Made by a program: the position numbers and the translations under genes. From assembly GCA_009859145.1 (NCBI GenBank), contig VRVR01000006.1:338596-402595 (forward strand): a DNA stretch of 64,000 nt. The letters run 5' to 3'. The notes below the pieces were generated by a model that was not told where the DNA came from, did no database searches, and worked only from the letters and a program-made list of their open reading frames with translations. This document shows, piece after piece, positions 2,257 through 59,292 of this stretch. The DNA is from Andalucia godoyi And28 (Eukaryota; Protista; Jakobida). How positions within the stretch are numbered: position 1 is the stretch's first letter; each line of letters starts with the position of its first letter.

Positions 2257-2461
2257 CAAAACAATAAATTAAATTTAAAAAAACTATAAAAAACAAATAA
2301 ATCAAAAAGAAGAAGAAATAATAATAATAATAACAACAATGATATAAGGTAACATAAATTAATCAATCCAAGAACTTAATAATTAGAACTCGCAGTTCAC
2401 GACACTTGATAAAACTCTTAACAACTGTACAAATGAACCATGTGAACGCAGGTGCACCACC

Positions 2462-2835: not shown

Positions 2836-2949
2836 TGCATGTATTTTCGGAAGCAAAGAGGTGCTGCTTGTTTAGGTGGTTGGGGTCAGGATGAATGAAA
2901 GAAGAGAGAGAGAGAGTAGAGAGAATGAGCTACAGCTGACAGGTCTCTG

Positions 2950-4041: not shown

Positions 4042-4529
4042 GTTGTTTTGAGCGGACTCTGTGTGTATGTATGTATATATATATGTGTGGGTGTGTGTAT
4101 GTTTTGTCCTCGTTTCCGTCTATCTGATGTCCTGCATTGTACAGTGATACTCTGGGTGTCCGCTTTCAGAATTCTTTGTAAGCGGACTGGTGCATCGTTG
4201 GCAACTTGCAGTCGGGAATCAGAGTTTTCTCCTCCGGTATTTCTCCCCCCTGACAAGAAACACTCGAAGGCTCTGTTGGATTGTGAAACGCACACATGGT
4301 CCACAAATCCCGATGTGTGCGTGAGCAGATTGTCGTCATGTCTGAGCTCCCCGCACCCGGGTTTTGTCAATCGAATAGCCGTGCTTCCATCTGGCTACAC
4401 AAACTTCAGAACCTCTCTCCGCGAACCGCTCCTTCGCTATCCATCTTTAAACATCGTTATCCATTTTTTCAGTGTTTTTATTTTTTTCAAATTTTTCTTT
4501 TTTCCACCCTCATAAATGTTACGTCGTCT

Positions 4530-5041
4530 GTCTGCTGCGTGCAAGACACATGACATGCACCTCAAGCTTACGACACTGGGCCGCCGCGGGTCGTGTCCGA
4601 TTCTTGCACACCGGATCTCACAACGTGTACCACCTCGAGGACATCGAGAAAGTCGTCGGGCAAGCTCCCGTCGAGGCGAGGCCGTCGTGCTTCATGCTGT
4701 CGCGGGGGCCATTGCGAGTGTCAGCAGCGATTGTTGCATTAAGCACAAGAGCTTGGGGACTGCGAGATCTGGGCGCGGTCGTCACGGGAGAATGCACTTC
4801 CGGGACATGCGGCCATCCGTCACTTCAGTGGAAACAAGATCTTCACATGTCCCACAAAGTGCATGTTGGATGACGGATCGATTGTGATTATGGAGCGGTG
4901 GTGCACGCAGCTTTTTTTGTTTTTTTATCTTACAAACGCCGAGGCATGTGTTGGGATATATTCCCCTTCCCGAGACTACGTCGCAACATTTGGTTATGCA
5001 ATGTCAGCAATGGCTATGTATGATATGTGCACAATGGAGAC
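4530..5041 (+). mobile_element. IS607-type relic F2-b: degenerate serine-recombinase TnpA joined to the Fanzor2 right end
   Basis: SSLRHWAAAGRVRFLHTGSHNVYHLEDIEKVVG (4562-4660) resembles the MerR-like HTH of IS607 TnpA. IASVSS (4711-4728) resembles the YARVSS catalytic motif and TDRL (4873) resembles DRLxRFG; the motifs fall in different frames. 4925-5041 aligns with the right end of F2-a. Confidence 0.7.
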
Positions 5042-5047
5042 TATGCA

Positions 5048-6715
5048 CTATGCAGAAGGGCCAACGTCTTCCAGCCACAGATCCATGGTGGAAGAACTTG
5101 GCTGCACTCGGGGTTTTGTAAACATCTTTTTGAGACACGATGAACCGACTGGGAATGCCGCGATGGTCAAGACCAACGCGACTGCGGGGCAGGCACCGGC
5201 AACAGAGTACGCGGTGACCCATCCCATCTTGTCTACGGACTCTGACGCCCACAGCGAGCCGAGGATTCGAGAGAGGGAGCCAAGGGAGGACACATAGCCC
5301 GAGAGGGTGGCCTGCGGTCTGGCACCCAGTGTGTGGGACAGAAGGACGTTGATAAGATTCTGCGTGAGCGCAAATCCAACGGACCAGATCAAGAAGGCTC
5401 CAAGCATGAATCGCCATGGCGCAACCCACATGGAAGTGTTGCTCGCATTCATGGCGTCATGGTCTTCCGGTTCTTCAGACCATGGTGCTATCAGAAAGAA
5501 GCCGACACTCATCGCAAGCAAACCGATCCAAAAGAAGGCAGCCTCGACAATATTGATACCTGCGGGTTGTGCGTTCTTTTTGTTTTCCAGTTTTTCGAGC
5601 AAAGGCGGCAGACTGAGAATCAACAAAAGACCAATTCCTCCAAACCCAGAAATTATGCCCGAGTTTTCAGCGACGCTGAGATTGTACATCTTGCTGGTGT
5701 AGACCACAAACAGCGTTTCCATGACGGCCGTCGAAAATCTGGATGCAAGCATTGCAAACATCAGAGAGCCGATTATCAGCTTTTCTCGTGGTTGCAAGCC
5801 GACAGCTCCTTCTTCACTCAACTCAATGAACGTTCCTTGACTTTGAGAATCCGGCAGATCGTCGAACGGCTGCGTGTCTGGGATCGTAAACCGTGTCAGC
5901 GTCCAAACAAAACAGATCACGGCGAAGCAGAACAGAAACATCCCCGGCAACGTATACTTGTCGAACTTCATTCCCCAAAACGAAAAATCGGCAAAACTCA
6001 ACAATGCGCCAATTCCGGGTGCGACTGCCGCTGCTGCAAGCTGACTCGATGACAACCAAGAGACAAGTCTCGTCCGCTTCTGGCGAATTCGCTGTGCGGG
6101 TGCATCGTCTTCCGGGGATTCAGTCTGTGCCTTCACAAAGTCGTGGTACCCCAACCACTCGGAAGCGAGCGAGCAGTACCCGCGTGCCTGGCCAAGAGTA
6201 CTTGCTCCAACGCCAATCAGCAGCCGCGAAACCATGAACAACGGAATTGAGGGATATGTCGAATACAAGAGGTTACCTACTGCGAGCAGGAAGGAGCACA
6301 AGAGCAACACGGCGCGATGGCCGGTCCGGACCGCCTTGTCAGACCAGTATCCAAACAACGGAGCAAACACCATACGAGATGCACTGTACAGTGCATTGAA
6401 TACGCCGTACATCTGCAGCGTGCCGCCGTTCTGGTGAAAATACGGCCACAGGGAGGCAAGCACGAAGCTTCGGCTGGCCTCTCCAAGGAATGCAACAAAC
6501 ACAACAAGGGCATAGGAAAGCCAAATGTAGTGTCGTTGTGTCTGCAATGCCGCCTCCGCATCTGTCTTTCTTCTCTGTTTCGGATGTCGAACAGTCGCAC
6601 TGTCCTTCCAGTCTCCGGACCACCGACCAGTATTAACTGTCACCCTCTTGTCCTCGCCATCCGCAGATTCCTCCTCTGGCGCTCTACCTTGGTCAGGCCT
6701 GTACTCCAACTCCAT
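5048..6715 (-). CDS. MFS transporter, MFSD8/CLN7-like
   Basis: 555 aa, about 12 TM; SLWPY, 'APLFGYWSDK', 'SRLLIGVGAS' and 'DKYTLPG' motifs are typical of MFSD8-like proteins. Confidence 0.8.
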   Translation of the reverse strand: MELEYRPDQGRAPEEESADGEDKRVTVNTGRWSGDWKDSATVRHPKQRRKTDAEAALQTQRHYIWLSYALVVFVAFLGEASRSFVLASLWPYFHQNGGTLQMYGVFNALYSASRMVFAPLFGYWSDKAVRTGHRAVLLLCSFLLAVGNLLYSTYPSIPLFMVSRLLIGVGASTLGQARGYCSLASEWLGYHDFVKAQTESPEDDAPAQRIRQKRTRLVSWLSSSQLAAAAVAPGIGALLSFADFSFWGMKFDKYTLPGMFLFCFAVICFVWTLTRFTIPDTQPFDDLPDSQSQGTFIELSEEGAVGLQPREKLIIGSLMFAMLASRFSTAVMETLFVVYTSKMYNLSVAENSGIISGFGGIGLLLILSLPPLLEKLENKKNAQPAGINIVEAAFFWIGLLAMSVGFFLIAPWSEEPEDHDAMNASNTSMWVAPWRFMLGAFLIWSVGFALTQNLINVLLSHTLGARPQATLSGYVSSLGSLSRILGSLWASESVDKMGWVTAYSVAGACPAVALVLTIAAFPVGSSCLKKMFTKPRVQPSSSTMDLWLEDVGPSA

Positions 6716-12465: not shown

Positions 12466-13743
12466 ATGCCAGAAATCCAAGTGGAGACGATCGATGGAGA
12501 AGCATTCACCGTTGATCTGCCACATTCGTCGTCGGTACTGAGACTTAAAGAAGAGATTTCTCTGCACACATCGGTTCCTATTTTTGCACAACGGCTTGTT
12601 CTTCGCGGCCGGATTTTGGAAGATGCTGCGTCCACAGACACCTTGTTCTCGACTCTGCAGGTGTATGATCGGTTCGTGGTGATGCTCCATGTTGACTCGG
12701 TGTACATGAACAGACATGTGAATTGCGACAATTCAAATCCAGGACGTATGTATCTCTCTCTCTCTCTCTCTCTCTCTTCTTTCTCGATAAGTTTTTTTGA
12801 AATATATGTGTCACTAACCCGAATGATTTTTGGCGTGAAAGCAGAGGTGAATCTGCAGATGCCTGGGGTGCGGGTTGGCCATTGCATGGTTCGAGTGGAT
12901 GCTCGAACAGCCTTGTTGTTTGGAGGAGTGTCGCAGAAGGTGTACACCAATGATGCGTTCTTGTATGATGTGGAGACGTACAGATTTGAAAAGATCGCAA
13001 TGACGGGCGATTTGCCTGAACCGCGGTCCGATCATGCTGCGTTTGTGTATGGCCACAAGCTGTGGACCTGGGGTGGGCGATCGAGCAACCAGTTCTTTTC
13101 GAGGATTCATTGCATGGATCTGGACACACATCGATGGAGTATTGTGTACCAGAATGGCGGGTTGGAGCCTCCCGCACGAGCTCGGTTTTCATACACGGTT
13201 TTCCAGAACCTCTTCATTGTTTTTGGCGGATATGGACCGCGGTTTGACCTGATGCAGGATCTGTGGATCTTCAACTTGGATACGATGCGCTGGGTCCAAG
13301 CTGCGCAGCTTGGGAACGTTCCGCCTCCTATTGCCGGAATGTCAATGTGCGTTATGGAGGATGAAATTTGGGCATTTGGAGGTCTGTCTGCCAGCTTTTC
13401 AAATGCCGTGTACGTGCTGAATCCGCATTCATTCACTTGGAGGTTTGTGCAGACAAAGGGGATGCAGCCTGCTCCGCGAGGAGTGCATATTGCTTCTGCA
13501 TTCGACCGGAAAATCGTCGTGTTTGGAGGCTTCAGCTCGCAATCGAGATTCAACTCGTTCCATGTGCTGGATACGCGATCGCTCGAATGGACCAGACCAG
13601 AAGTCGACTTTGAGCTCCACGGTCGTTCTGCCCACGCTGGAGTACGGATGGGACGTCGACATTGGCTGATCTATGGCGGCGAAAACGGTGCTGTTGTGTT
13701 CTCGGATCTGGCAACATTGGAGTTGCACATGTCAGACTTGTAG
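12466..13743 (+). CDS. Ubiquitin-like domain plus kelch-repeat protein (2 exons, about 392 aa)
   Basis: N-terminal UBL (QRLVLRGRILED) and six kelch repeats (R..H...FGG...W). Intron 12746-12844. Confidence 0.85.
   Translation: MPEIQVETIDGEAFTVDLPHSSSVLRLKEEISLHTSVPIFAQRLVLRGRILEDAASTDTLFSTLQVYDRFVVMLHVDSVYMNRHVNCDNSNPGRMYLSLSLSLSSFSISFFEIYVSLTRMIFGVKAEVNLQMPGVRVGHCMVRVDARTALLFGGVSQKVYTNDAFLYDVETYRFEKIAMTGDLPEPRSDHAAFVYGHKLWTWGGRSSNQFFSRIHCMDLDTHRWSIVYQNGGLEPPARARFSYTVFQNLFIVFGGYGPRFDLMQDLWIFNLDTMRWVQAAQLGNVPPPIAGMSMCVMEDEIWAFGGLSASFSNAVYVLNPHSFTWRFVQTKGMQPAPRGVHIASAFDRKIVVFGGFSSQSRFNSFHVLDTRSLEWTRPEVDFELHGRSAHAGVRMGRRHWLIYGGENGAVVFSDLATLELHMSDL
12746..12844 (+). other. Spliceosomal intron (99 nt, in frame and stop-free)
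   Basis: GTATGT donor, (TC)n tract, CACTAAC branch site (12812-12818), CAG acceptor. Removal gives NPG-Q-VNLQMPGVRVGH. Confidence 0.8.
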
Positions 13744-30818: not shown

Positions 30819-30920
30819 ATGTCAGATGCAGACGAAGCCTATGTAGATTTGTACGGTGTGTCGCGGCCGCCTCCGCCGCCTCCCATTGAAAAGAAAGCCG
30901 TCTTGGCCGCCGCCCAAGCC

Positions 30921-30973
<53 letters not shown>

Positions 30974-32006
30974 ACAAGGACAAGGGCAGTCAGCGCAAGG
31001 CGGTCATCCGGAAGAGTCGTCTGCGGCGACGACCGCAACTGCCGTGCAGTCCGGCAAGTCATCCGATGGAAAAGATCAGAGCAGCAGCGACAAGGTCGGG
31101 GACGATGATGAGGATGAGGATGATGATGAGGATGAGGATGATGATGATGAAAAGGAGGGTTCAAAGGTTCGAATTACGTTAAAGTCGATTAATGTGCGAC
31201 TTCCAACAAGCGCAAATGCAAACACTCACGCACCAACGACCGCTGCGAACCCTGCTGCGAACCCTTCGTCCGCGACGGTGGTGGGTGGCGCGACATCGTC
31301 TTCTGCAACGACTGTGGTTCGAGCGAGTGGGGCGACGTCGTCTCTTGTTCCGCTGATTCCTGGTTACGACCAGCCTGTGATTGCACTGGATGTGTACGAA
31401 GAGGAGCTCGATACACATGCGGACAAGCCCTGGCGAAAGCCTGGGGCACATGCGCCTGACTTTTTCAACTACGGCTTCACCGAGGACACGTGGCGGCTGT
31501 ACTGCCACAAACAGCGTGTGCTGCGACACGAACGCAACAAGGGTTCTGCGTGGTCACAGGCGGACGAGCAGCTGTATCTGCAGACCCAACAGGCGATTGC
31601 CAGTGGGCAGAGAAAGCCGTGGGCCGAGTTTGATGCAGAGTTTGCAGAGGAACGGAGAGCAAGAGGACAAGCTGCGCCGATCGGCTACGCGCGGACGGTC
31701 AATACCCAGGATGCTACCATGGCGTCAGCTCCCCAATCGCAAGGACATTCCCAATCCCAGTCTCAAGGACAGTTCCAAGGACAAGGACAAGGACAGGGAC
31801 AGGGGTATGGTGGGTATCATCGAGGTGGATACGGTGGTGGTAACCGGGATCGCGATCGCGATCGAGATGGTGGAGGAGGAGGTGGTGGTAGAGGTGGGTA
31901 CAACAGGGATTCGAACCGAGGAGGGTATGAAAACAGAGGAGGAGGAGGGTTCAAAAGAGAACAGAGAGATTGGGACCAGGATAGAGATGCCAAGAGGCGA
32001 AGATAG
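30819..32006 (+). CDS. FIP1L1: Pre-mRNA 3' end processing factor FIP1
   Basis: Fip1 motif DKPWRKPGAHAPDFFNYGFTEDTWRLYC, acidic N-terminus, RD/RGG-rich tail. ATG at 30819. Confidence 0.93.
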
Positions 32007-32562: not shown

Positions 32563-34056
32563 TTAATAAGGATGATATGTGTGGCCACCTTGATGAAACT
32601 GCTGCTGCTGCTGCTGCTGTCGAAGCTGGTTGTTGAATGAGTCAAACGCCGCAAGATTCGCCAACGTGGACATGTTGAGAACACCGGGCTGGAGAGAATC
32701 CAAGGTATCTTGAGAACCAGTTGGTGCGCTCTGTGAAAACAACGCTTCCTGATGCCCCGGAAGCGAGTGCTGGTGTTGCTGATGCTGTACTTGGTGCGCA
32801 TGCGGAAGCGGATGGAGATGCGGATGGTGTGCATGGTGCAGTGTGGGAAGCAGATGAGAATGTCCCACTATTGACGATTGCGGTGCCATTTGTTGTTGTT
32901 GTTGCTGTTGTTGCTGTTGTTGTTGCTGTTGTTGTTGTGACTGTTGTGGTTGCTGGTGATGGTGGTGATGTTGTTGTTGCTGCTGTGATGGGAGTGGCAC
33001 CTGTTGCTGCTGCTGCTGCTGTTGAGATCGACGTGCCTGATCAAGCATCTTGCGCTTGTATCGCATTCGTTTGTTGCCGAACCAGTTGTTACACTGAGCT
33101 AGCGTTAGCCCGGTCTCATCCGACAGCCGCTGTTTCTCCTCGTCCGTTGGATACGGGTCATGAAGATGCAAAAAGAACCACCGATTAAGCACTTCCGTTG
33201 CGTTTTTCGACAAGCTTTTTTTCCTCTTGCTGGGACTCGATCCGCCATGGCCACCACTGTGTGTACGATGGTGATGGTGCCGACGGAGATGATGGTGCGG
33301 ATCCGAGTCCGAGTGATCATCAGAACGATCATCGTTTCCGGACGAGGAGTCCGAGTCCGAATGAAACTCGTCTGGGAACTCGCTCGACTCTGCTGCACTG
33401 CCTACCGCAGAGGGAATCCGAGATGCCAGCCCATGAATTTGTCCCGGGGGCTGCGAAAGAAAGTGGTGGTGCAGCGGATGTGCAGAAGAAACAGAAGAAG
33501 ACGACACGGAAGAAGAAGAAGAAGCCGGCAGCGATGCACCCGCTGTTGCTGAAGCAGAAGAGACCTGTGTATCAAGAGGCATGCGGGCGAGGGAGTCTGC
33601 CAGCATGGCGCAGTACTCGGCGCATGCGCGGTCCAGAGAGTCGAGCTCGAGGCTTCCAGCAAGCATCACATCCAGATATTCGTGAAACAGGCTCGTTTCG
33701 CTTGACATTTCCAATTGGAAGGGATCCGCGGTGTTCTGTGGGAGCTGGAAGAACTCGGCGGCGGTCGGCAGGATAGTCGGGAGATCGCTGCCGGGGCGCA
33801 GCGACTGAGACGCACACGCAGCCTGGTGAGCTGCATGGACGGCCGCGAGTCCAGGCCACGTGTACAGCCCTGTATCAACGCCCTTGAGATTGCGAGGGGG
33901 CACCGAAGCGGCAGGAGCAGCAGACGACGACGACGAGGCGCTGGAGCTTGCCACCGCCTGCACAGGAAGCGTTTGGTGCGGCACCGGGCGGACCGCAGAC
34001 GTCAAGGCAACCGCAAGCGGGAACAGCACGTGTTGTGACAACGGATCCGGATGCAT
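32563..34056 (-). CDS. TALE homeodomain protein, PBX/PBC-like
   Basis: Homeodomain SLSKNATEVLNRWFFLHLHDPYPTDEEKQRLSDETGLTLAQCNNWFGNKRMRYKRK (PYP TALE loop; WFGNKR.RYK is the PBX signature). ELDSLDRACAEY resembles PBC-B. Confidence 0.88.
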   Translation of the reverse strand: MHPDPLSQHVLFPLAVALTSAVRPVPHQTLPVQAVASSSASSSSSAAPAASVPPRNLKGVDTGLYTWPGLAAVHAAHQAACASQSLRPGSDLPTILPTAAEFFQLPQNTADPFQLEMSSETSLFHEYLDVMLAGSLELDSLDRACAEYCAMLADSLARMPLDTQVSSASATAGASLPASSSSSVSSSSVSSAHPLHHHFLSQPPGQIHGLASRIPSAVGSAAESSEFPDEFHSDSDSSSGNDDRSDDHSDSDPHHHLRRHHHHRTHSGGHGGSSPSKRKKSLSKNATEVLNRWFFLHLHDPYPTDEEKQRLSDETGLTLAQCNNWFGNKRMRYKRKMLDQARRSQQQQQQQQVPLPSQQQQQHHHHHQQPQQSQQQQQQQQQQQQQQQQMAPQSSIVGHSHLLPTLHHAHHPHLHPLPHAHQVQHQQHQHSLPGHQEALFSQSAPTGSQDTLDSLQPGVLNMSTLANLAAFDSFNNQLRQQQQQQQFHQGGHTYHPY

Positions 34057-35080
34057 ATCGTCAGGTACAGTGGATCAGATGTTCTTACCTTTTCCTTTTC
34101 TTCTTCTACTTCTTGGAGTTCCGAAATGCACGCACCGCAAAACGCAAAAGCTCGGAGTAACAGGCGCAACAAAAAAGGACTGCGAGGGAGAAAGAAATGT
34201 GAAATTTAAATTAAAATAATTATGATAATAAGAAAAAACGAGAAAAAAACAGTAAAAATAAATTAAGGAATTCTTTTTTTCCGGATGCAGATGTCGCAGT
34301 TCTCTAGAGGCTGGAAGAAAGTCTGTCTAAGAAAATTATGGGGGGAAAAATTAACACCAATATAACAACATGCGCACATACGCAGAAAACGTGCGGAAAA
34401 GTGTAAAAATATAGCCAAAAGCAAATAAAGTATGGTATCAGAAAAGCACACACACATACACACACATACACATACACACACACACAGAGACACAGACACA
34501 GACACAGAGGCGCCAATGAATAAATGTGGCAAAATGATGCAAGTGATGGGCCTGAGGGGGTCGAGAAAAGGCAGGTTGGGGCGGGGAATTGGATATTTGT
34601 GGGCCCCCAACTGTCACATTGAAAGTGACGAGAGTGACTGACATCTGACAGGTTTGTCATGGAGGAAATAAGCGACTCAAGCAAAACTTGTCCAAAAAAA
34701 GAAGAAACGGAAAAACAAGCTGCTGTAAAAAAAAAGACCATCATTACGCTAACGAAAAATTCATTAAAAAAGAATCCGCCCATTTCGGAGAAAATGGTGC
34801 AGGTTTGCACAAAAGGGAAATTAAAGAAACAAAAAGAAAAAGAAGACCTAGGGCAAACGCCTAACCCTAGGTGTCTCCATTTTTCTCAATTGCATTTTAT
34901 TTTCTCAATTGCTTGCACTAGGTCGTCAACCCTCTCCTGAGCACACCATTTGGAAACGCAATTGCTTCCTTCGTGGTTATTTCATATTTCTTCCTTCCTT
35001 CCTCTCTTTCTTTTTCTCTCTCTTCTTTTTCTTTCTTGTGCCTATTTTTCAAAATTTGTGTATCATTTGCGTAATTCAAG

Positions 35081-35563
35081 ATGGTTAACTCGAAGGGCTA
35101 CCGCGCACGTACTCGCCACACTTTCCAGCGTGGCTTCCGCAAGCACGGCACCATCAAGCTGAGCACGTATTTCACGGACTTCCGTCTGGGAGATGTTGTT
35201 GACGTCAAGGCGAACGGAGCGATCCACAAGGGTATGCCGCACAAGTTCTACCACGGCAAGACCGGAGTTGTGTGGAACATCTCCCCGCAGGCGATTGGAG
35301 TGGAGCTGAACAAGCAGGTCCGCAACCGCATTGTCAAGAAGCGCATCCATGTCCGTGTGGAGCACCTCAAGAAGTCGCGTTCGTCCCTCGACTTCATTGC
35401 CCGCCGTGCCCGCAACGAGCAACTCAAGCGTGATGCAAAGAAGACTGGAGTCAAGGCCGTCATCAAGCGCCAGCCCATCCAGCCCCGCGAAGGAGAGATC
35501 ATCAAGAGCCAGCTCACCTCCATCGAGACCATCCACGCTATCCCGTACGAACTTGTTGCGTAA
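35081..35563 (+). CDS. RPL21: 60S ribosomal protein eL21
   Basis: SKGYRARTRHTF, AIHKGMPHKFYHGKTG.VWN and KRIHVRVEH. Confidence 0.98.
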   Translation: MVNSKGYRARTRHTFQRGFRKHGTIKLSTYFTDFRLGDVVDVKANGAIHKGMPHKFYHGKTGVVWNISPQAIGVELNKQVRNRIVKKRIHVRVEHLKKSRSSLDFIARRARNEQLKRDAKKTGVKAVIKRQPIQPREGEIIKSQLTSIETIHAIPYELVA

Positions 35564-35776
35564 AGAATAGAAGTGAAAATTGGCCAACTTCTGCGTCTTC
35601 ACCTTCCTCCACGTCCTTTTTTACTTGCCATCTTCAGTCTTTCCGTCCTTGTTCATGTATGCGTTTTTGGGCGCTCGTTTTTTTAAAATTATTATTACGT
35701 AACTTAAATATCCGTTTGGTGTTGCATTGCACTGCAGGGACACCGGTCACTGGGAGCCGTCCGTCCGCGGTCGGCG

Positions 35777-36910
35777 CTAGGACATCCAGGACTGCATCAG
35801 CTCATGATCGCTGCCTTTGGTCTCCTTGTCCCATGACGACTGCCAGATCGAGTCGAGGTCATCCAGCGACAGTGCATCTTCGCTGTGACACTGACTCTGG
35901 CTGCTGGAGCTTCTGCTCGAGGAGCTGTTGATGGTGTTGCTCGGGTCGCCATCCAGTACAGCCTTGTCGCCATCCGCAGCAGCAGCGGTATCTTGTCGTT
36001 CATTCGAGCACAGGTCGAACAATATCGGCAAGAACGAAGAAGAACCTTGCGTGGGAGCTGCTGTGCGGTCCGTCGGTGGCTGCTGTTGCGAATTCTGATG
36101 ATGTGTCGTGAGAACAACACCGCCACCACCGACAGACATGTACGGCACTTCCAGTCCGGTTGATTCTTGGTCCTCGGGTTCAGGGCATACAACATCTCTT
36201 CTGCGCTTCTGGCTGCGAATCAGTTGTTCACAATCACTCAGAAACGTCGGCATAAAGGAAAGCAGCTCTCGAACCGTGCGAAGAATGCGTTCGTCTTGGG
36301 AAGCATCCTGCATGGACACTCGTTTCCGGCTTGGCTGCGGGGACGCAAGAACGGGGCCGATCGAGGCTGCTCTAGCTCGGGACCGCATGTCGAACACGGC
36401 CTTGATCGACGCGCTCGCTTCATGGACAATCTGGACTGTTCTCTGTTCCGTGCGCTTTTGCAGGAGATCTGTCTTTTCGGACAGCCTCAGAACTGCTTCA
36501 TTGACCTTATTGATGTAGCTCTGCAAGCGAGCAGTTCGCGCGTTCATCGCGTCCACAAGTTCTCGATCATACTGGTCCGCGTTGGTTGAGACTGACGACG
36601 GCCGCGCTCGACAGAGTGCTTGCAGATGAGCCGCAGAGAGTATTTGGCATGCAATCAGCAGTTTGCGAAGCAGCAGCTCGCCGTACGATCCAGGAGCAAT
36701 CCTTCCTGCCGTCGATGTGCGCTTGCTGTCGTTAGCAGCATTTGCAGACCCGGTCGCGGACTGCAAGGAAGAGCTGTGTCGGGACGCATGCGGCAGCTGG
36801 TGGTCGCAGGAGGAGGACGGGGTCCATTGGCTGGTGGTGCCGTCGATCGAGTGGTTGAATGGCGACGTGCAGAACAAGGATACTGCGGCTGCAGCTTCCA
36901 CCGGATTCAT
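35777..36910 (-). CDS. Hypothetical protein with a central coiled-coil and disordered tail (about 377 aa)
   Basis: Long ORF; the ATG at 36910 follows an AT-rich UTR-like tract. No family recognised. Confidence 0.6.
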   Translation of the reverse strand: MNPVEAAAAVSLFCTSPFNHSIDGTTSQWTPSSSCDHQLPHASRHSSSLQSATGSANAANDSKRTSTAGRIAPGSYGELLLRKLLIACQILSAAHLQALCRARPSSVSTNADQYDRELVDAMNARTARLQSYINKVNEAVLRLSEKTDLLQKRTEQRTVQIVHEASASIKAVFDMRSRARAASIGPVLASPQPSRKRVSMQDASQDERILRTVRELLSFMPTFLSDCEQLIRSQKRRRDVVCPEPEDQESTGLEVPYMSVGGGGVVLTTHHQNSQQQPPTDRTAAPTQGSSSFLPILFDLCSNERQDTAAAADGDKAVLDGDPSNTINSSSSRSSSSQSQCHSEDALSLDDLDSIWQSSWDKETKGSDHELMQSWMS

Positions 36911-37535
36911 GTCTTTAGAAAAATACACTAAACGTACATTTGGTTTTTTGTTTTTGTTTTTTGGTTCTTGTTGAAGAGAAAAGGGGAACAAGTATATATG
37001 CAAACAATGAGAGTGGGGCAGAGATTCGGGCCAGATATCCAGATGCGTACTTTTGCCATGCTCAGCGTGACTGCGCAGTTTACACGAATCGATCGACAGC
37101 AAGTCAGGATGTGACGACCCATCATCCGATTCTTGCGGCCTCGGGGGCCAAGGCATCACATCACATTTTTGGAAACTGTGCCGCGGGACTGCGGGAGCGC
37201 GGGGTTTCTGTGAAATATGATGGGGAAGAGATTCGTCACGTCTGCACCACATTCGTGCTGCACTTCACGAATCCCGTATCATGCACCGCTCTAAAGAGCG
37301 GATCGCCCGCCAAGCTCCTGGAAACAGCAGCGTCACTTTTTTTTCTCTTCTGCCTCTTCGTTCTGTTTTCTTCTTTTTTCCCTTTGGAACATCCCATCTA
37401 TCGAAAAAACTTCTCTTTGTGCCCTGTGAAGCGGGAAAAGATATATATATATATATATATATAACGAGATTCGCACTTGCTGTGTATCTGTGTGCGTTTT
37501 TTATCTTCTTTCCGTGCGTGTCTACCAGCTCAAGC

Positions 37536-38744
37536 ATGAACACCGCCACGAGGATCGTCAGCAGTGAAGACCCCGAGTTCCTGCCGATTGCGTCGCTTTC
37601 GATGTCGATGCTGAATAACTCTGTTTCCTCTGTATTGATGTCGTCTTCCTTGAGCAGTTCATTTGCAAGACTCCAAGAGTCGCTTCTGAGGCATCCTGAC
37701 GCACCAGAAATCGAAGGGCTGCTGGCAGAAATCGCAGTGTCTGACTGCGCTGCTGGCGCTGCATGCTGCGCCGCCTTGACTTCGGGTAACCTCTGTTGGG
37801 AAGCAGAGTTTGCGGCACTGGTCCAACAAGTGTTTTCACAGTATCCGCTGGTAGCCATCGCAGAGGAAACGAAAAGCGTTGTTCAGGATCTGGAAAATGT
37901 GTTCCGCACACAAGCAGCAAAACTGCAGTCCACTCGGCAGCGGTCGCTGGAACTGCTGGATCGCTTTATGAACGAGGCGCCGATCTCATCAGTATCATCA
38001 CAATGCGCAGCACCGTCCGATGCTTACTGGAAGAACTGTGAACAGCAAATGAAATGCAGGATGACGGAGCAAATCTTTCAGGACGCTTTGCGTGCGATCC
38101 TGGCACAAATCGCCCATTCATTGCAGGACTACTGCAGGGCAGAACAAGAGACATTGATGCAATCGTCGAATGCCGGTCATCTCGCCTGCATGTTTCAACA
38201 AACCCTTCCAACACCGCCCTCGCTTGCAGAAATTCAGAATCATCTTCCTTTCTGTGACGAGCGCACCGTGCACAACAATTATTCGTCGGGGTATGTCGGA
38301 CGGCGTGCCGAGTTTGGTTCGACACATCAGGACCTCATGGTCAGAAAGGCGGAGTCCGCTGAGCCAGAGGGAGCAGTATCGGTCCAAAGCAACTTCGCCC
38401 CTGGGAGTGCAAGTAAGACCAAGAAGCTCCCGAAGGCGGCAGTCGAATATTTCAAGAAATGGATGGTTGATCACTGTGACAACCCTTATCCTTCAGAGGA
38501 CGAAAAGGCTGAATTCTGTCAGCAGTTCTCCATCACGGTTGCACAGGTCAATAATTGGTTCATCAATAGCAGAGTGCGGACATGGAGACCGCTGATGAAG
38601 CAAATGGCAGGGAAAACCGAAAAAATGGTCAAGAATTCGCAGCAGGAAGACCTGTGCAAACATCTGCAGCAGCGATTGTATGGCCGCGGAGTAGGACGCC
38701 CGTCGAATTCTTCACTCCACGCATCCGCAGTGACATATTCCTGA
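37536..38744 (+). CDS. TALE homeodomain protein with MEINOX-like N-terminus (MEIS/KNOX/BEL-related)
   Basis: KLPKAAVEYFKKWMVDHCDNPYPSEDEK...VNNWFINSRVRTWRP. LLRHPDAPEI resembles the KNOX1/MEIS-A HP motif and LELLDRFM resembles KNOX2/MEIS-B ELDxFM. Confidence 0.88.
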   Translation: MNTATRIVSSEDPEFLPIASLSMSMLNNSVSSVLMSSSLSSSFARLQESLLRHPDAPEIEGLLAEIAVSDCAAGAACCAALTSGNLCWEAEFAALVQQVFSQYPLVAIAEETKSVVQDLENVFRTQAAKLQSTRQRSLELLDRFMNEAPISSVSSQCAAPSDAYWKNCEQQMKCRMTEQIFQDALRAILAQIAHSLQDYCRAEQETLMQSSNAGHLACMFQQTLPTPPSLAEIQNHLPFCDERTVHNNYSSGYVGRRAEFGSTHQDLMVRKAESAEPEGAVSVQSNFAPGSASKTKKLPKAAVEYFKKWMVDHCDNPYPSEDEKAEFCQQFSITVAQVNNWFINSRVRTWRPLMKQMAGKTEKMVKNSQQEDLCKHLQQRLYGRGVGRPSNSSLHASAVTYS

Positions 38745-39571: not shown

Positions 39572-41680
39572 CTACCACGGATCGGTCTCTGCAGGTTCGA
39601 ATCCATTGTGTACGAAAGTGTGCTCGCGGAGGCGGAGCGTGTGCATTATTGGGTGTGCGATAGCATTTGTGAGTGCCGGTCCGTGACGGCACTCCGAATC
39701 TGATCCATGGATCATTGCCACTATTTCAGAAATTACGGCATGTATCTCTGGCTTTTGCAAGCAGAAACAGTCGTCTAAATCCAGCCTGAGAACGGACAGA
39801 CGCTTCATAGAACGCACAAACGAACCGTGTGCATTCATGGCAGAGTGCAGCTGGTGAGCAGAAAACCAAGTGACTGGAGATAACATAACGAGCTCCTGGA
39901 GATTCACAAAGTTGCCGGATAACAGCAGGTTGCGGAAGCCATCGAGGCAGACCGCATGGTTTTCCAGGACGAGTTTTTCAATCTGCGATGATAATGGAGC
40001 GTTGGAAAGATTTTGAATTCCCGTGGACGAAACGACCGAGACGAAGTGGACAGTGCGAAGGTATGGAAACGTGCACTTTCCAAGTTCTGAAATCAGACGA
40101 TCTCCAAGGGAGTTCTCCACGTGCAAACAAACATGCTGAAGTTTCGTGGTGTTGCTCAGATGAAGCATAGCCTTTCCGAGGGACAGTGCAATGCATCCGT
40201 TGCGTTCAGCAGTTGTCAGTTCAGCGTACGAAGGATCGTCGAGATCGACACGAAACGAGGCGCGCAGTTTTCGGAGTTCTGGAGCCTGGATTGCAGGACA
40301 TAGAGCGTCAATCGAGAAAACGTGTCCTGGCCTCGAGACCAGGCTCAGTTTTCTGAGAGATGGCCAGGGAAGCGCGAACAGTTCTGCAATGCGGTCGTTC
40401 GAATCTGCAATGTAGAATAGATCCAGGTTTTCAATCTTGTGTCGCAAAACTGCGAAGCTGTCTCGAAGTGATTTGCAGCTCATCCATTTTGGAATGTCGA
40501 AATGACCAGAAGATATTGGAGATTCTCGAATTCCGCAGCACCATCTTGTGCTTGTCAGTTGCTGTCCCCAGCGGGACGACGCAACTGCGTAGACGACCGT
40601 CTCGGGAATGGATTGCCGCTGGCCCATCGCAAGTTCGCGAAGGCTCGTTTGCGAGAAGTCTGCATGATAGACGATGCCAGGTGGAATAGTTTGCCACAGC
40701 GAGGGGTCTTCTATCGAAAGCGCCTCCAAGGACGGAAACCATGCCCGTGCTCCAGCAGGAGCCACGAAGAGAGGCTCGTATCCTCCGTGCGAGAAGTCCA
40801 GGGACGAAATTTTCAGCCTTTTCAGCCCGAGAGCTCGAGTTCCGAGGGCGCAGAAAAACGTGTACATTTGCCTTGAGAAAACCGCGGTGGAGGCGCAGGA
40901 TTCGCATCGAGGACGATCTTGCAGCTTCGGACAGGTCAGTGGAAGACCGAATTCCAGATCTTCAAGCGTGGTCAGGAAGAACGCCTCTGCGAGGGACTGC
41001 AGGTGGTGCATGGTTGTCCAGCAATGCGATGTGCTGGCACTGCACGCATAGTGGTCAGGCAGTAACTGGTGACCGTACTCGTACACCAGTCTTCGCAGAT
41101 GCCGAAACTGCACTTGGCAGAGCACCCGAAACTGCATCCCAGCTTCCAGAAACAGCAATGGGCGCTCATCACGTCCCGAGTCACAGAATGCAAACCTCTG
41201 CAGGACGACATCGTTCACGGATTCTCGAAAGCTGTCGGTTCTCGAAAGAATTTGGAATAGACCGGGCTCTTCGGATGCTGCTGCGTTCGTTTCAATCTTC
41301 ACGTCTTGAACTTTGAAATCAGAAAGATGCCGGAAGGCTCTCTTTGCGGTTGTCCACCAGTTCACAATGTCGTTTGTATTTGTTTTTGAGAAACCGTGCA
41401 AGGTGCCTAGGGGGCAGCTTGTCGACCGAACCTGCTCGCGAATGGCTTCCCGGAAGGAAAACAGAGATTCTGTCAGCATCTTCTGGGGAAGCTGCCTACC
41501 GAGGTGTCCACGCAAGGATCTCCAAAAATTAGCTTCGACAAGCAAACCCTTTGCTTTCGTTGCGATCCATTCTGTTCTTCTGCATACCGCTCCAAAGTGA
41601 ACCAAATCACTGAGTGGCAGGAAGGAAGCAACTCGCTTCGGCATGTCGCTGTTCATGAACAGCAGCCCACCCAGTGACAT
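39572..41680 (-). CDS. F-box-like plus leucine-rich-repeat (RNI-like) protein
   Basis: MPKRVASFLPLSDLVHFGAVCRR resembles an F-box; repeated LxxLxL (LKRLKI, LEALSI, LRKLSL, LQELVM). The frame is open upstream to 41788, so the start is uncertain. Confidence 0.7.
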   Translation of the reverse strand: MSLGGLLFMNSDMPKRVASFLPLSDLVHFGAVCRRTEWIATKAKGLLVEANFWRSLRGHLGRQLPQKMLTESLFSFREAIREQVRSTSCPLGTLHGFSKTNTNDIVNWWTTAKRAFRHLSDFKVQDVKIETNAAASEEPGLFQILSRTDSFRESVNDVVLQRFAFCDSGRDERPLLFLEAGMQFRVLCQVQFRHLRRLVYEYGHQLLPDHYACSASTSHCWTTMHHLQSLAEAFFLTTLEDLEFGLPLTCPKLQDRPRCESCASTAVFSRQMYTFFCALGTRALGLKRLKISSLDFSHGGYEPLFVAPAGARAWFPSLEALSIEDPSLWQTIPPGIVYHADFSQTSLRELAMGQRQSIPETVVYAVASSRWGQQLTSTRWCCGIRESPISSGHFDIPKWMSCKSLRDSFAVLRHKIENLDLFYIADSNDRIAELFALPWPSLRKLSLVSRPGHVFSIDALCPAIQAPELRKLRASFRVDLDDPSYAELTTAERNGCIALSLGKAMLHLSNTTKLQHVCLHVENSLGDRLISELGKCTFPYLRTVHFVSVVSSTGIQNLSNAPLSSQIEKLVLENHAVCLDGFRNLLLSGNFVNLQELVMLSPVTWFSAHQLHSAMNAHGSFVRSMKRLSVLRLDLDDCFCLQKPEIHAVISEIVAMIHGSDSECRHGPALTNAIAHPIMHTLRLREHTFVHNGFEPAETDPW

Positions 41681-42251
41681 GCTCTGATTGCAGTCACACA
41701 AAACCTGCAAGACGTACTTCACAGCAAACAAAGTTCTGAAAAGCAGGTTTCTTCCTTCCCACGAGTCGGAAGTGTTCAGAAAGAGCAATTAATAACAACA
41801 AAACAAAAACAAAAACAAAAAAAACGTGATTTTCTGTGAGACACGTGCTTCTTATTTTTCGTTTTGTTTGAACGTGCGTTTAACGCTGACGTGATTTTCT
41901 TTGTCTTCGTATTTTTGTTCTAGTTATTATGATGATTATGATTATCATTGTCTCTTTTCCTGACTCGTAAACTTTCTGTCGAATCGCGGAAGTTGATAGG
42001 ATGCAGATCACGGAGCATCCCTTGACTGGCATGCTACTGGAAAAACAGCAACATATATCATCAGCAATAAAATTTTTTTAATTAAAAATAAATAAATAGC
42101 ATTTTTAAAATTCTACGAGACTGTAAAGCGTCTCCAGCACTTCTGAAAGTTGCGCACAATGTATCGTTTCCAGCCAATGCACATACTGCGCATGGCAGCC
42201 GGCCCCGCCTGTGCAAACATGCATTCCAAAAAACGGTTGGCTGATTTGCTT

Positions 42252-43955
42252 TCAGGAATATGGAGTCGAACGCTGCTGACGCACAAGGGGCAGTGCGCTC
42301 GGAGGAGGGGAATACAAGACCGAGAGCGGGTTTAGAGTCGGTGGTATATCAACCAGAGGGATATTCTCTGACAACATCGCTCTTGACTGCTTGACTCTCA
42401 GTCTGCGTTTTCGAATGTAGAAAAACGTCGCCACTCCGCCGATGCAAGAAACTGCTGCCACTGCACCGACTGTTGAGCCTGCGATGATGGCAGTGTCATC
42501 CGAGGACGAAGACGAGTCGCCTGAGTTTGGTCCGACATTCGGTGCGAATGAAATCCTTCTGACGAGCACCAGTGAAAATGTGCCAGCATACGGAAATGGA
42601 ATGAAGATGGAATAGAGACATCCATCGACATTGTGCAGATATGTCTCGACGCTCATCAGAACATTCTGAACGCTGATCCCTGAGCCGTTCGTGAAGATCC
42701 ACTGAAGAGTGTGGTTTGCTGGCAACGACGCAATTGAGCAGTAGTTGCCGACTTTGGTTACGTAGGAGGCTCCCAGACTGGCTGAGACCAGCGATGCCGC
42801 TGAGAAGCTGACTCGATACGAAATTGGCAAACGGTCGGGAACACGAACTACAGGATCAGGAAACGAAAAGTTCAGGTAGATTGACCGACTGGCGAGAACT
42901 CGCAGAGACGGATCGCTAACATTGAAAGATGCATTTGCCACAGTAGAATTGAACTCTTGCGAAATTCTGGAAACAACTCGCATGGATTCATCCATCGGTT
43001 TGCCATCGTTCTTTGCAGTTGCAAAAGAGGGAGGGAAGACCACAGAATCGTTTGCTGCCCCGTAGAAGGCCAGCATGGATGCGTTTCCAGATTGAACAAA
43101 GTCGCTAAATTCGCCATCCGTAACATTGATGTACTGTGGAGCAATCACAGGAAGCAGAGTCGAGCAGTAATTCGACGTTCCATGAATGGGAACCCTTGTG
43201 TGGCACAGAGCAAAGTATGCAGTGTTGCGTCTATTAAGAAAGATTCCCCCAGTCGTTCCGTTTGCACTCAATCGATCCGCTGGCTGCGTCGATTTGGACG
43301 AGGACAAGTAAGCGGTGGCGTCGTAGAGTTCTGATTGACTGGCATTGAATCCTCTTAGGATTACGAACTCGCCCCCAAATACCCTCGCAGCTGTCCCGTT
43401 CAAGAACCACTGTACTGGGTCCAAGCTGCATTTTCCTGCTTCGATATCCTCATCCGCACACATGACGACGCGTGGAATGATCGTGGAAAGCCCTCGAACC
43501 TCCAAAGAGTAGATTTCCGGCGGAAATGAGAAGGAGGTGCTGCAAGGATTGGGGCCATGCACGTTTCCAGAAGTAAACGTGAACCAGAACCGAATCAAGT
43601 ACGAAGCGTAGGTTCGGGAGTCAGCAGGTTTCACATCATCAAACCGAATGACCACGTCTTCTCCCGTCGCATTAAATTGAAATGACGTTGAAATGCTGCT
43701 GAACGACGAGATTGCGCTGTTGTTGTTGAAGCACTGCAAAACGCTGAAGATCCCATCCCCAATGAACATCTGGACTCTGACACTGCTCAGCGTAGCCTTT
43801 GTTTCGGATGACAATGCAAAGACTTGTGTGATGTTCGGAAACCTAACAGTGAATGCATCTGCCCAGAGAAACACGGGGGGCTCAGCATACAGACCAGGTA
43901 TGGGAATCCCATGCACACCGACACAAAATAGCAAAACCACCAAAACGAACTTCAT
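42252..43955 (-). CDS. Type I single-pass membrane protein of unknown function
   Basis: Signal peptide MKFVLVVLLFCVGVHG, beta-rich ectodomain with many N-x-S/T sites, TM helix IIAGSTVGAVAAVSCIGGVATFFYI, basic stop-transfer RKRR. Confidence 0.8.
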   Translation of the reverse strand: MKFVLVVLLFCVGVHGIPIPGLYAEPPVFLWADAFTVRFPNITQVFALSSETKATLSSVRVQMFIGDGIFSVLQCFNNNSAISSFSSISTSFQFNATGEDVVIRFDDVKPADSRTYASYLIRFWFTFTSGNVHGPNPCSTSFSFPPEIYSLEVRGLSTIIPRVVMCADEDIEAGKCSLDPVQWFLNGTAARVFGGEFVILRGFNASQSELYDATAYLSSSKSTQPADRLSANGTTGGIFLNRRNTAYFALCHTRVPIHGTSNYCSTLLPVIAPQYINVTDGEFSDFVQSGNASMLAFYGAANDSVVFPPSFATAKNDGKPMDESMRVVSRISQEFNSTVANASFNVSDPSLRVLASRSIYLNFSFPDPVVRVPDRLPISYRVSFSAASLVSASLGASYVTKVGNYCSIASLPANHTLQWIFTNGSGISVQNVLMSVETYLHNVDGCLYSIFIPFPYAGTFSLVLVRRISFAPNVGPNSGDSSSSSDDTAIIAGSTVGAVAAVSCIGGVATFFYIRKRRLRVKQSRAMLSENIPLVDIPPTLNPLSVLYSPPPSALPLVRQQRSTPYS

Positions 43956-57774: not shown

Positions 57775-59292
57775 ATGGTGTACACGAAATGGTGGGATTC
57801 TTCTGCGCTGGAGGAAATACAGGTGGTTTCTTCGCATTCGGTGATTTCGAAAGTGAGACTGAGTGCGAACTGCATGGACCAGGCATTTCGGAGAGTCGCA
57901 GAAGGATGCACGCCGTTCTTTATGCTCGGCTCGGTTGCACAATCGCGATCGCGAGAGACTGAGCATGTTCAAGAACTTGTGCTGGACCGCGTTGATGCTG
58001 GAATCAATCTTGCTGAACGCGGATGGGAACCTTCGTTTCGGATGGATTATGAAATCCCGTGCTTTGTGTCCTCCACATTTTCATCCACTCTTTCATCATC
58101 TTCACACTCGTCACCGAGCCAGGAGGGACTTGATGTGCTCTCACTGTCTTCCGTCATGTACAAATCACCACCGAAAATTATCGCATTGTCTGCCACGATC
58201 CAGCATGAGGAAGACCCGCAGTCACACCGCAGCAGCGGCGATCATCGTCTTCCTCTTCTCCGTCTGTCGGTTCGATTGCTTCCTTTTGAGTTTTCGCTGA
58301 AACGAATTGCTGCGATTCCGCTCGATGCACCGTCTGCGGCGGCTTCCTTCTCGCCGAACTTGCTTTGTTTTGGATTTCTGGCCTCGGACTCGGCTGCGCG
58401 GAAGTTATCGTGCTTGAGCGTGTCGAGTCCGCAGCGAGCAACGGCTGCTGCGTTGTGTGGCGTGTGGATCTCTGGGACCGCATCGACGACACATCCGTCG
58501 GTTCTCGGTTGGATGTCCTTCTTTTCACTGTCCACAAGACTCGCGAATCGGACAAATGGGCCCTGGATCCTGGTGCTGGCGCAAAGTGCAGTTTCGCACA
58601 TGTGCTTTGAGTTTTCATATCGCCCGCTGAACTCAGGGTTGCCAGTCGCGCACGAAGTTCTACTCCGTCCAAACGAGTCCTCGTATGATCTTTGCCCGCA
58701 GTCGCCAAACGAAGGTCTCCACACAGATTCCGAGCAGTCGAATCGTAATGAACCGCAGCAGGCGCGTCTGCCGTGCAGTCTGGAGATCCCAAACGCGAGC
58801 TTCTTCTTAGCTCGCATCAAAGAGCTGGAGGAAATCGTGCGACACCAGCGACTGGAAATCGAGCAACTGAAGATGCAGCAGTGCCAGACACGTCCCCCGA
58901 ATCCTGAGGTCGCTTCCGCAGCAGTAGTTCCAGGATCACCAATCGTCACCTCTGCTGTCGGGCACGTGGCAAAGTGCTCCGAAGATGCAGTTCCGAACAT
59001 ACGCCATACTGCAAATGCGGCGCGAAGGAGGACTCCATCTCCAATCTTGTCTGACGTGTCGTCTGACGTGCCAGACGAGATGTATGCATCGCAGTCGGAC
59101 GATGACACTTCGATTGCGGACAGCCATTCTGTGCTTCTTCCGAGCATTCGCAGTGGCGGTGTCAGCGGGTCGAGTGCTTCTGCAAGTCTGGTGATTCCAA
59201 AAATGGTGGACGACTGCCCTGTGGACAATCTGGATGCCCTGCTCGAACCAGATACGATTGATCTCAAATACATGGGAATTCGATCGCGATAA
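57775..59292 (+). CDS. STIL/SAS-5/Ana2-like centriole assembly protein
   Basis: STIL_N-like WD...AFRR...FFMLGS...LVLDRVDAG and GVWISG...HP; central coiled-coil RIKELEEIVRHQRLEIEQL; C-terminal IDLKYM resembles the STAN motif end. Confidence 0.65.
   Translation: MVYTKWWDSSALEEIQVVSSHSVISKVRLSANCMDQAFRRVAEGCTPFFMLGSVAQSRSRETEHVQELVLDRVDAGINLAERGWEPSFRMDYEIPCFVSSTFSSTLSSSSHSSPSQEGLDVLSLSSVMYKSPPKIIALSATIQHEEDPQSHRSSGDHRLPLLRLSVRLLPFEFSLKRIAAIPLDAPSAAASFSPNLLCFGFLASDSAARKLSCLSVSSPQRATAAALCGVWISGTASTTHPSVLGWMSFFSLSTRLANRTNGPWILVLAQSAVSHMCFEFSYRPLNSGLPVAHEVLLRPNESSYDLCPQSPNEGLHTDSEQSNRNEPQQARLPCSLEIPNASFFLARIKELEEIVRHQRLEIEQLKMQQCQTRPPNPEVASAAVVPGSPIVTSAVGHVAKCSEDAVPNIRHTANAARRRTPSPILSDVSSDVPDEMYASQSDDDTSIADSHSVLLPSIRSGGVSGSSASASLVIPKMVDDCPVDNLDALLEPDTIDLKYMGIRSR

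Follow-up and report, generated by a model that had tools for sequence, protein, structure and literature searches.

Do the two TALE homeobox genes that lie a few kilobases apart in the jakobid Andalucia godoyi represent the partners of a heterodimeric transcription factor, and does their proximity on the chromosome have a meaning of its own? The genes, called here TALE1 and TALE2, are located in a stretch of 64,000 nucleotides from strain And28 (contig VRVR01000006.1 of assembly GCA_009859145.1, positions 338,596 to 402,595), hereafter the window. The interpretation that we favour is that they are the two members of a TALE pair, a PBX-type TALE1 and an Ile50 TALE2, which by homology would constitute a heterodimeric factor, and that their linkage is probably an old inherited synteny. 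TALE heterodimers are thought to be an ancestral eukaryotic switch from haploid to diploid, and jakobids are placed near the proposed roots of the eukaryotic tree; the candidate pair described here is compact, has no introns and would be simple to work with experimentally. The two genes and their parts are as follows (positions are those of the window).

32563..34056, minus strand: TALE1, an intron-less gene for 497 amino acids with a PBX-type homeodomain (Pfam Homeobox_KN, E = 9e-16, and Homeodomain)
34003..34038, minus strand: TALE1 motif A, residues ~7-18, 'SQHVLFPLAVAL', of MEIS-A / KN-A / PBC-A type (alignment and hhalign)
33586..33702, minus strand: TALE1 motif B helix, residues 119-157, '...LELDSLDRACAEYCAMLADSL' (hhalign; AlphaFold2 helix at 119-157)
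33040..33228, minus strand: TALE1 homeodomain with Gly50 and the PYP loop, 'NNWFGNKRMRYKRK', as seen in the sequence itself
37536..38744, plus strand: TALE2, an intron-less gene for 402 amino acids, 100% identical to the public model P0017 (Pfam Homeobox_KN, E = 1e-17, and Homeodomain)
37647..38165, plus strand: TALE2 N-terminal helical domain, residues ~38-210 (AlphaFold2, profile search and hhalign)
38421..38609, plus strand: TALE2 homeodomain with Ile50 and the PYP loop, 'NNWFINSRVRTWRP', as seen in the sequence itself
38634..38681, plus strand: conserved helix C-terminal to the TALE2 homeodomain, 'EDLCKHLQQRLYG', kept in the orthologue P0018 and partly in the orthologue P0021

Both homeodomains belong to the TALE superclass, as each carries the three-residue PYP loop between helices 1 and 2 ('HDPYPT', 'DNPYPS') and matches Homeobox_KN. 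The TALE1 homeodomain bears the PBC signature 'ATEVLN...NNWFGNKRMRYKRK' with Gly50 and a helix 3 of the NWFGNKRIRYKK type, which assigns it to the PBC class. Among solved structures its best match is PBX1/Exd (73 bits), with MEIS at 63 bits. In a small neighbour-joining tree, the TALE1 family, PBX and the gene P0022/L008, which carries a Pfam PBC exon, form one clade with 97% bootstrap, and TALE2 falls outside it. The initial annotation, made from the sequence before our analysis, had called the minus-strand gene PBX-like, and its homeodomain bears this out. TALE2 has Ile50 and the WFIN-type homeodomain of the MEIS/KNOX class; its best matches among solved structures are MEIS2/PKNOX1 (57 bits), followed by TGIF and PBX (49 bits). 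In the neighbour-joining tree, TALE2 and its two orthologues form a clade of their own (100% bootstrap), which adjoins BELL without support and lies in no known class, and the TALE2 homeodomain could not be placed among MEIS, KNOX and BELL. The homeodomain tree had been set beforehand as a possible refutation of the pair, through a single clade of recent tandem duplicates. The two homeodomains are 34% identical and are found in separate clades, and we regard TALE1 and TALE2, on these comparisons, as deeply diverged paralogues of different classes.

The TALE1 orthologue is an open reading frame (ORF) of 587 amino acids on the metagenome contig L002, inside which the protein P0001 is a shorter gene call. 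The orthologues of TALE2 are P0018, on contig L003, and P0021, on contig L004. Between TALE1 and L002 the homeodomain shows 92% protein identity and 73% DNA identity, with third codon positions accounting for 39 of the 50 nucleotide differences; between TALE2 and P0018 it is 74% identical, with third positions holding 35 of the 57 differences. This excess of third-position differences indicates that both homeoboxes are under purifying selection. The helix 'EDLCKHLQQRLYG' that follows the TALE2 homeodomain corresponds to residues 367-382 and is predicted by AlphaFold2 with a predicted local distance difference test score (pLDDT) of ~86.

Regarding the gene models, the TALE2 ORF opens at 37281, and the stretch upstream of 37536 is of low complexity. 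The protein collection returned no exact or near-identical TALE1 protein, and TALE1 may be absent from the public annotation. A CAG-type repeat at 32890-32979 encodes a long poly-Gln run within TALE1, directly after the homeodomain. A six-frame motif scan of the 64 kb window revealed no further homeodomain (WF.N.R); the other match to this pattern, near 42342, is interrupted by in-frame stops and was rejected. The window has ~50% G+C and long uninterrupted ORFs, in agreement with the published genome of A. godoyi, which is ~20 Mb in size, compactly organized and poor in introns, with very few polymorphisms in the strain (PMC7050145; accession VRVR00000000). In the public gene-position index, the RPL21 protein encoded in the window has a single exact match, on contig VRVR01000006.1.

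Each of the two proteins has a conserved helical region N-terminal to its homeodomain, and this is the anatomy of the known heterodimerising pairs. These regions were compared with KN-A, KN-B and PBL domain alignments taken from Joo et al. 2018 (PMC6219170), the six-sequence PBL alignment consisting of human PBX1, Acanthamoeba, Guillardia, Naegleria 78561 and two glaucophytes. The PBC references were six non-animal metagenome TALEs (L013, L019, L041, L024, L015 and L016) and two animal PBX proteins. A Pfam scan of four of them, L013, L019, L041 and L024, recovered a full PBC domain with E-values from 1e-16 to 1e-26; L015 and L016 are nearly identical to each other and were outside that scan. 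These six TALEs, found in metagenome transcripts or contigs, have a 'NNWFGNKRIRYKRKCLE' homeodomain and are clearly different from animal PBX. Four BELL proteins and one KNOX protein served as other references. With Pfam, none of the domains PBC, Meis_PKNOX_N (PF16493), KNOX1 (PF03790), KNOX2 (PF03791) and POX was found at E<=10 in the N-terminal halves of TALE1, TALE2 and their closest relatives, and hidden Markov models (HMMs) built from the published KN-A, KN-B and PBL alignments gave marginal matches only, the best being KN-B on the L002 orthologue (10.9 bits).

The TALE1 family alignment was composed of TALE1, L002, P0002, P0003 and L006, to which L064 and L011 were later added. Motif A reads 'SQHVLFPLAVAL', 'SSHPLLPLCVSL', 'SHPMF', 'HHPLFPSLLA' and 'AHPLFPTTVASVLAC' across the family, and the alignment cores in relatives include 'SHPLLPL' and 'AHPLFPTT'. 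The N-terminus of TALE1 is conserved in five relatives, and the position of the shared motif, 7-20 residues from the N-terminus, supports the TALE1 start codon. Motif B is the MEINOX motif common to MEIS-B, KN-B and the first half of PBC-B. In profile comparisons (hhalign), the TALE1 family matched the PBC references with a probability of 82% (E = 1e-5, 109 columns), MEIS/PKNOX with 87% (E = 4e-6; human MEIS1 and PKNOX1, a weaker reference) and the published KN-A alignment with 55-67% (E = 5e-5 to 1e-4). The scores of the family are ~40, against 13-20 for unrelated helical alignments and ~10 for column shuffles, and 0 of 99 valid column shuffles reached the PBC and MEIS/PKNOX scores. One further shuffle, which scored ~130 over 2-11 columns against two templates, was excluded as a software artefact. 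The match to PBC recovers motif A and the first half of PBC-B only (E = 1e-5). The complete PBC domain (PBC-A and PBC-B, Pfam PF03792) is not matched by TALE1 even at E<=10, and the protein after motif B is of low complexity, unconserved and predicted to be disordered, so that the C-terminal half of PBC-B is missing. Judged by these profiles, the N-terminus of TALE1 is of a genuine MEINOX/PBC type.

P0003 belongs to the heterolobosean Pharyngomonas kirbyi (transcriptome GECH01), and L006 and L011 come from AT-rich, Asn-rich organisms; the presence of the TALE1 architecture in these three indicates that it is spread beyond jakobids. The TALE1-type gene of L006 (Logan SRR29240419) is located at 4083-5426 on the plus strand and has motifs A and B like those of TALE1; its homeobox contains an intron immediately after 'HLH' (homeodomain position 23/24).

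The N-terminal domain of TALE2 is less easily classified. Residues ~38-210 are predicted to be helical (AlphaFold2 on an alignment of three sequences, pLDDT mostly 80-89), and the homeodomain and the C-terminal helix are predicted as well. When a profile of the N-terminal domain alone was run exhaustively against 1.84 billion representative proteins, three members only were retrieved. The third of them, P0021 (E = 7e-6), has the same homeodomain, yet the query contained the N-terminal domain only. According to this search, the domain is lineage-restricted, to three related organisms. A fold search of the AlphaFold2 model against the PDB gave homeodomain matches only and none for the N-terminal domain.

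By hhalign, the TALE2 family matched the PBL alignment with a probability of 39% (E = 3e-4, 56 columns, score 27), a score reached by 0 of 100 shuffles. The match to the PBC references (E = 3e-3, 92 columns) is above every shuffle, and that to MEIS, the weaker reference (E = 8e-3, 97 collinear columns, score 23), is above all 60 shuffles. The best local agreement is between P0021 'LMDQRSVISPVSSQE' and L013 'LLRDQSTTRPVHEQE', in the C-terminal half of PBC-B, for which the PBL pattern is '...Q..(F)R.V(S/T)..E......F'. Nothing significant was obtained for TALE2 with the KN-A and KN-B HMMs and profiles, the comparison with four BELL N-termini gave E = 0.6, and there is no Pfam match to POX (SKY and BELL, PF07526). 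Between the N-terminal families of TALE1 and TALE2 the E-value is 0.04-0.08. The TALE2 domain is possibly PBL-like. The initial annotation had described the plus-strand gene as MEINOX-bearing, a label that we could not confirm, as Meis_PKNOX_N, KNOX1/2, PBC and POX are not matched at E<=10 and MEIS is approached only at E = 8e-3. The class labels given to the two genes are therefore appropriate for the homeodomains (PBX-like on the minus strand, MEIS-matching on the plus strand) and misleading for the N-termini, the clear MEINOX motif being in the PBX-like TALE1.

In the mechanism that we propose, TALE1 would be the PBX-type partner, combining a Gly50 homeodomain with a short MEINOX/PBC-type N-terminus (motif A and one long helix, motif B), and TALE2 would combine Ile50 with a helical N-terminal domain that is larger, specific to its lineage and possibly derived from the PBL domain found in non-KNOX TALEs. 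If PBX-MEIS, KNOX-BELL and GSM1-GSP1 are taken as models, the two proteins would pair through their N-terminal helical regions, and the heterodimer, which is plausible on the strength of this analogy, would bind DNA jointly as a transcription factor. As for the linkage of the genes, we interpret it as synteny of old standing, inherited within a compact genome and possibly left by a local duplication long ago, and not as a mating-type locus.

The question of linkage involves three other genes, listed here with their counterparts in relatives.

30819..32006, plus strand: Fip1, pre-mRNA 3' processing factor (Pfam Fip1, E = 5e-19), convergent with TALE1 and part of the conserved block
L002 2452-3630 and L004 143-1312, minus strand in both: Fip1 counterparts (gene-order comparison)
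35081..35563, plus strand: RPL21 (eL21), 160 amino acids, between the TALE genes (Ribosomal_L21e, E = 9e-42)
L004 2342-2821, plus strand: RPL21 counterpart, 61% identical; the first 25 codons are also present at the end of L002, plus strand (sequence comparison)
35777..36910, minus strand: orphan gene without Pfam match, divergent from TALE2 (ORF to 37252; likely start 36910)

The two TALE genes had been described as divergent, with starts 3.5 kb apart and with RPL21 and one orphan gene as their sole separators. We measured 3,480 bp between the starts, and the divergent arrangement, RPL21 and the orphan gene were all found as described. The Fip1 ORF reaches back to 30594; the probable ATG at 30819 was chosen against the N-terminus of the L002 counterpart. 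The spacer between TALE1 and RPL21 contains a (CA)n microsatellite (34447-34506). The orphan gene evolves fast, and its product has a helical or coiled-coil appearance from sequence.

The neighbours of each TALE gene recur in relatives. Contig L002 (4,173 bp, Joint Genome Institute (JGI) metagenome 3300042934) carries TALE1 (+) at 541-2304, Fip1 (-) at 2452-3630 and RPL21 (+) from 4098 to the contig end, this fragment comprising the first 25 codons (80% identical). Contig L004 (6,735 bp, Logan assembly SRR15116022, 59.5% G+C) carries Fip1 (-), RPL21 (+), an orphan counterpart (-) and the TALE2 orthologue P0021 (+) at 4856-5890, which is ~40% identical to TALE2 over the aligned part. The orphan counterpart, at 3011-4006, has the same position and orientation as in A. 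godoyi and is 25% identical (blastp E = 0.12). Contig L003 (2,801 bp, from the same metagenome as L002) contains the TALE2 orthologue with ~900 bp upstream, where an ORF that runs off the contig end (3-209, -) is possibly an N-terminal fragment of the orphan gene (weak match, p ~0.06). The divergent pair of orphan gene and TALE2 is the best-conserved adjacency in the block. Taken together, these contigs suggest a combined order TALE1 (+), Fip1 (-), RPL21 (+), orphan (-), TALE2 (+). Compared with L002 and L004, the convergent Fip1-TALE1 pair of A. godoyi is inverted as a unit relative to RPL21, and the divergent orientation of the TALE genes is therefore not conserved. A search for inverted repeats at the ends of the Fip1-TALE1 block gave low-complexity matches only.

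The block is whole in A. godoyi only, and each of its halves recurs in one related organism. To the right of TALE2, A. godoyi, L003 and L004 each have a different gene; the two ORFs downstream of TALE2 in A. godoyi, at 39572-41788 and 42252-43955 (both minus strand; 738 and 567 amino acids), have no Pfam match and are not beside TALE2 in L003 and L004. For two given genes in a genome of ~20 Mb, we estimate the chance of a spacing of ~5 kb to be near 5e-4, or ~0.5% for ten candidate pairs. Of the earlier proposal of a linked partner pair, the linkage and the deep divergence stand, with the neighbours of each gene recurring in relatives, and the divergent orientation is specific to A. godoyi. 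We also tried eL21 as a yardstick of distance and set it aside as uninformative on relatedness, the eL21 of L004 scoring 180-190 bits against animal and fungal eL21 of solved structures.

Outside these contigs, a metagenome scan with the TALE1 homeodomain yielded 80 loci, mostly intron-split PBC genes or short transcripts, none with a linked TALE of the other class, RPL21 or Fip1. A scan with the TALE2 family gave 490 pattern matches, 0 of which were confirmed, and a word-index protein search with the homeodomain profile returned short fragments only. No linked TALE partner was found around L006 (15 kb), L008, L090 and L091. Two PBX-type homeobox regions 1.2 kb apart in the same orientation were observed in a 34% G+C, intron-rich genome (L062 756-2201 and L063 10001-11446); this is a tandem duplicate of one class, unlike the A. 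godoyi pair.

Several points weigh against the interpretation that we favour. No Pfam model of a dimerisation domain matches TALE1 or TALE2, and the TALE2 scores of 27 (PBL) and 23 (MEIS), like the score against the PBC references, are only modestly above the 13-20 obtained for unrelated helical alignments. Human MEIS1 and PKNOX1 are a weaker reference than the others. The two TALE genes occur together on no contig other than that of A. godoyi: L002 and L003, although from one metagenome, are short and separate, and L004 stops 142 bp past Fip1, precisely where TALE1 is expected. Near the TALE1-type genes of L006, L011, L012 and L090, no second TALE gene is present in flanks of up to ~10 kb, and RPL21 and Fip1 are absent from the same flanks. 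The chance figure of 5e-4 scales with the number of TALE gene pairs in the whole genome and is only roughly bounded.

A first alternative, unlikely in our opinion although it keeps some weight, is that TALE1 and TALE2 have no functional relationship, or none beyond being paralogues, with an incidental linkage and a shared block that reflects slow decay of gene order. The presence of the housekeeping genes RPL21 and Fip1 between the TALE genes in the block order is consistent with this, and the wider neighbourhood is of the same kind: the products of the other window ORFs of at least 200 amino acids are MFS transporters, VPS11, POP1, TAF5, an adaptin, a sphingolipid desaturase, a PDK1-like kinase, an IBR-type E3 ligase and others of a comparable housekeeping nature. 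The difference in TALE orientation between A. godoyi and its relatives, the lack of detectable shared repeats or special sequence features at the locus and the TALE1-type genes of other organisms that have no linked partner point in the same direction. However, a spacing of ~5 kb has a low chance even with ten candidate pairs, as estimated above, and the block persists despite the divergence of RPL21 (61% identity) and TALE2 (~40%), while the gene right of TALE2 varies in all three organisms.

A further alternative, which we consider improbable, is that both genes arose by a local duplication of which the linkage is a remnant, either in the ancient split of the two heterodimerising TALE classes or in an old event within Discoba that was followed by strong divergence of TALE2. 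A homeodomain in no known class and an N-terminal domain limited to three related organisms would fit such a history of TALE2, as would the PBC/MEINOX-type similarity of both N-termini, and same-class tandem TALE duplicates do exist elsewhere (L062/L063). Nevertheless, the N-terminal families of TALE1 and TALE2 are not detectably closer to each other (hhalign E = 0.04-0.08) than to outside references, the firm grouping of the TALE1 homeodomain with PBX leaves TALE2 outside, and it would be exceptional for a linkage to have been kept from a time before the last eukaryotic common ancestor. There is also only a slender chance that heterodimerising TALE partners are linked throughout a deep-branching lineage, be it as the trace of a duplication or as a locus controlling sex or the life cycle in jakobids.

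Finally, a mating-type-like or life-cycle switch locus, in which linked partner alleles would be co-inherited and the heterodimer would signal gamete fusion, is very improbable: known TALE pairs do govern the haploid-to-diploid transition (PMC6219170), the genes are divergent in A. godoyi and the N-terminal regions change much faster than the homeodomains (TALE2, ~33% against 72% identity), but the genome paper makes no mention of sex and reports very few polymorphisms in the strain (PMC7050145), the genes are non-adjacent and of unconserved orientation, both are of the TALE class, unlike HD1/HD2, no other mating-related gene is present in the 64 kb, the search for inverted repeats that could serve a flip-flop switch gave low-complexity matches only, and the locus is represented by a single strain and a single haplotype. 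Nothing that we found supports a mating-type role. The composite PBX-MEIS site TGATTGACAG has three one-mismatch matches in the 64 kb, against 7.3 expected, and none in the block or its spacers.

Elsewhere in the window, an ORF of 505 amino acids (57775-59292, +) weakly matches the N-terminal domain of STIL (E = 1e-5, which does not reach the Pfam cut-off) and is a possible centriole-duplication factor, and another ORF (12466-13743, +) combines an N-terminal ubiquitin domain with Kelch repeats.

The preferred interpretation, a TALE pair in old synteny, can be set against the systems already described. In basidiomycetes, the mating genes HD1 and HD2 are adjacent and multiallelic, one being a TALE-like and the other a typical homeodomain gene. 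The A. godoyi locus resembles them as two homeodomain genes in a small region, divergent in this species. It differs from them in that both genes are TALE genes, two unrelated genes lie between them and the orientation is different in relatives. The initial comparison with the divergent linked pair of basidiomycetes is thus abandoned: the intervening genes include the housekeeping gene RPL21, and in relatives TALE1 is flipped, having in L002 the orientation of RPL21 with Fip1 between these two, an arrangement of Fip1 and RPL21 that recurs in L004.

With the PBX/Exd and MEIS/PKNOX proteins of animals, the similarities are closer. TALE1 shares with PBX/Exd the PBC signature (ATEVLN...NWFGNKRxRYK, Gly50), the clustering with PBX and an N-terminus of PBC/MEIS type, but it has no C-terminal half of PBC-B and fails Pfam PBC. 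TALE2 shares Ile50 with MEIS/PKNOX, which provide its closest solved structures, but it fails Pfam Meis_PKNOX_N, and its weak N-terminal match is nearer to PBC-B than to MEIS. The animal PBX/Exd and MEIS/PKNOX genes are not known to be linked.

Within Discoba, to which A. godoyi also belongs, Naegleria gruberi has TALEs with PBC homology and TALEs with MEIS/KNOX homology, and heterodimerising TALE pairs have been placed near the eukaryotic root (Joo et al. 2018, PMC6219170). As both TALE types are already published for Naegleria, such a pair in a jakobid is expected. Full-text searches returned no paper that joins jakobids with TALE homeodomains and none on linked TALE partner genes in Discoba, and linked partners are not mentioned in the text of Joo et al. 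2018 (PMC6219170). Three things are new here: the genes are tightly linked, in a block whose halves each recur in a related organism; the N-terminal domain of TALE2 has a very narrow distribution; and N-terminus and homeodomain are combined in an unusual way, the Gly50 protein carrying MEINOX/PBC motifs and the Ile50 protein a domain that is possibly PBC-B-like. If the linkage holds in complete jakobid genomes, it would be a new fact on TALE partners and could indicate co-inheritance or an old tandem origin; if it is neutral synteny only, the locus adds one more lineage with an already published TALE pair.

Another parallel in the organization of the pair is offered by the Archaeplastida, where KNOX is associated with non-KNOX TALEs (the PBL-bearing GLX, PBX-Red, GSP1 and BELL). 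There, one partner has KN-A/KN-B motifs and the other a PBL domain; in A. godoyi one partner is KN-A/KN-B-like and the other carries a helical region that is possibly PBL-like, and in the tree alignment the TALE2 sequence 'WFINSRVRTWRP' is similar to 'WFINARVRLWKP' of BELL. Heterodimerisation of the pairs of Joo et al. 2018 (PMC6219170) was tested by yeast two-hybrid, whereas that of the A. godoyi pair is predicted by homology. N-terminus and homeodomain are paired differently in A. godoyi, where it is the PBX-type protein that bears the KN-A/KN-B-like motifs and the Ile50 protein that bears the possibly PBL-like domain, and this combination bears on the origin of the two partner classes from one ancestor.

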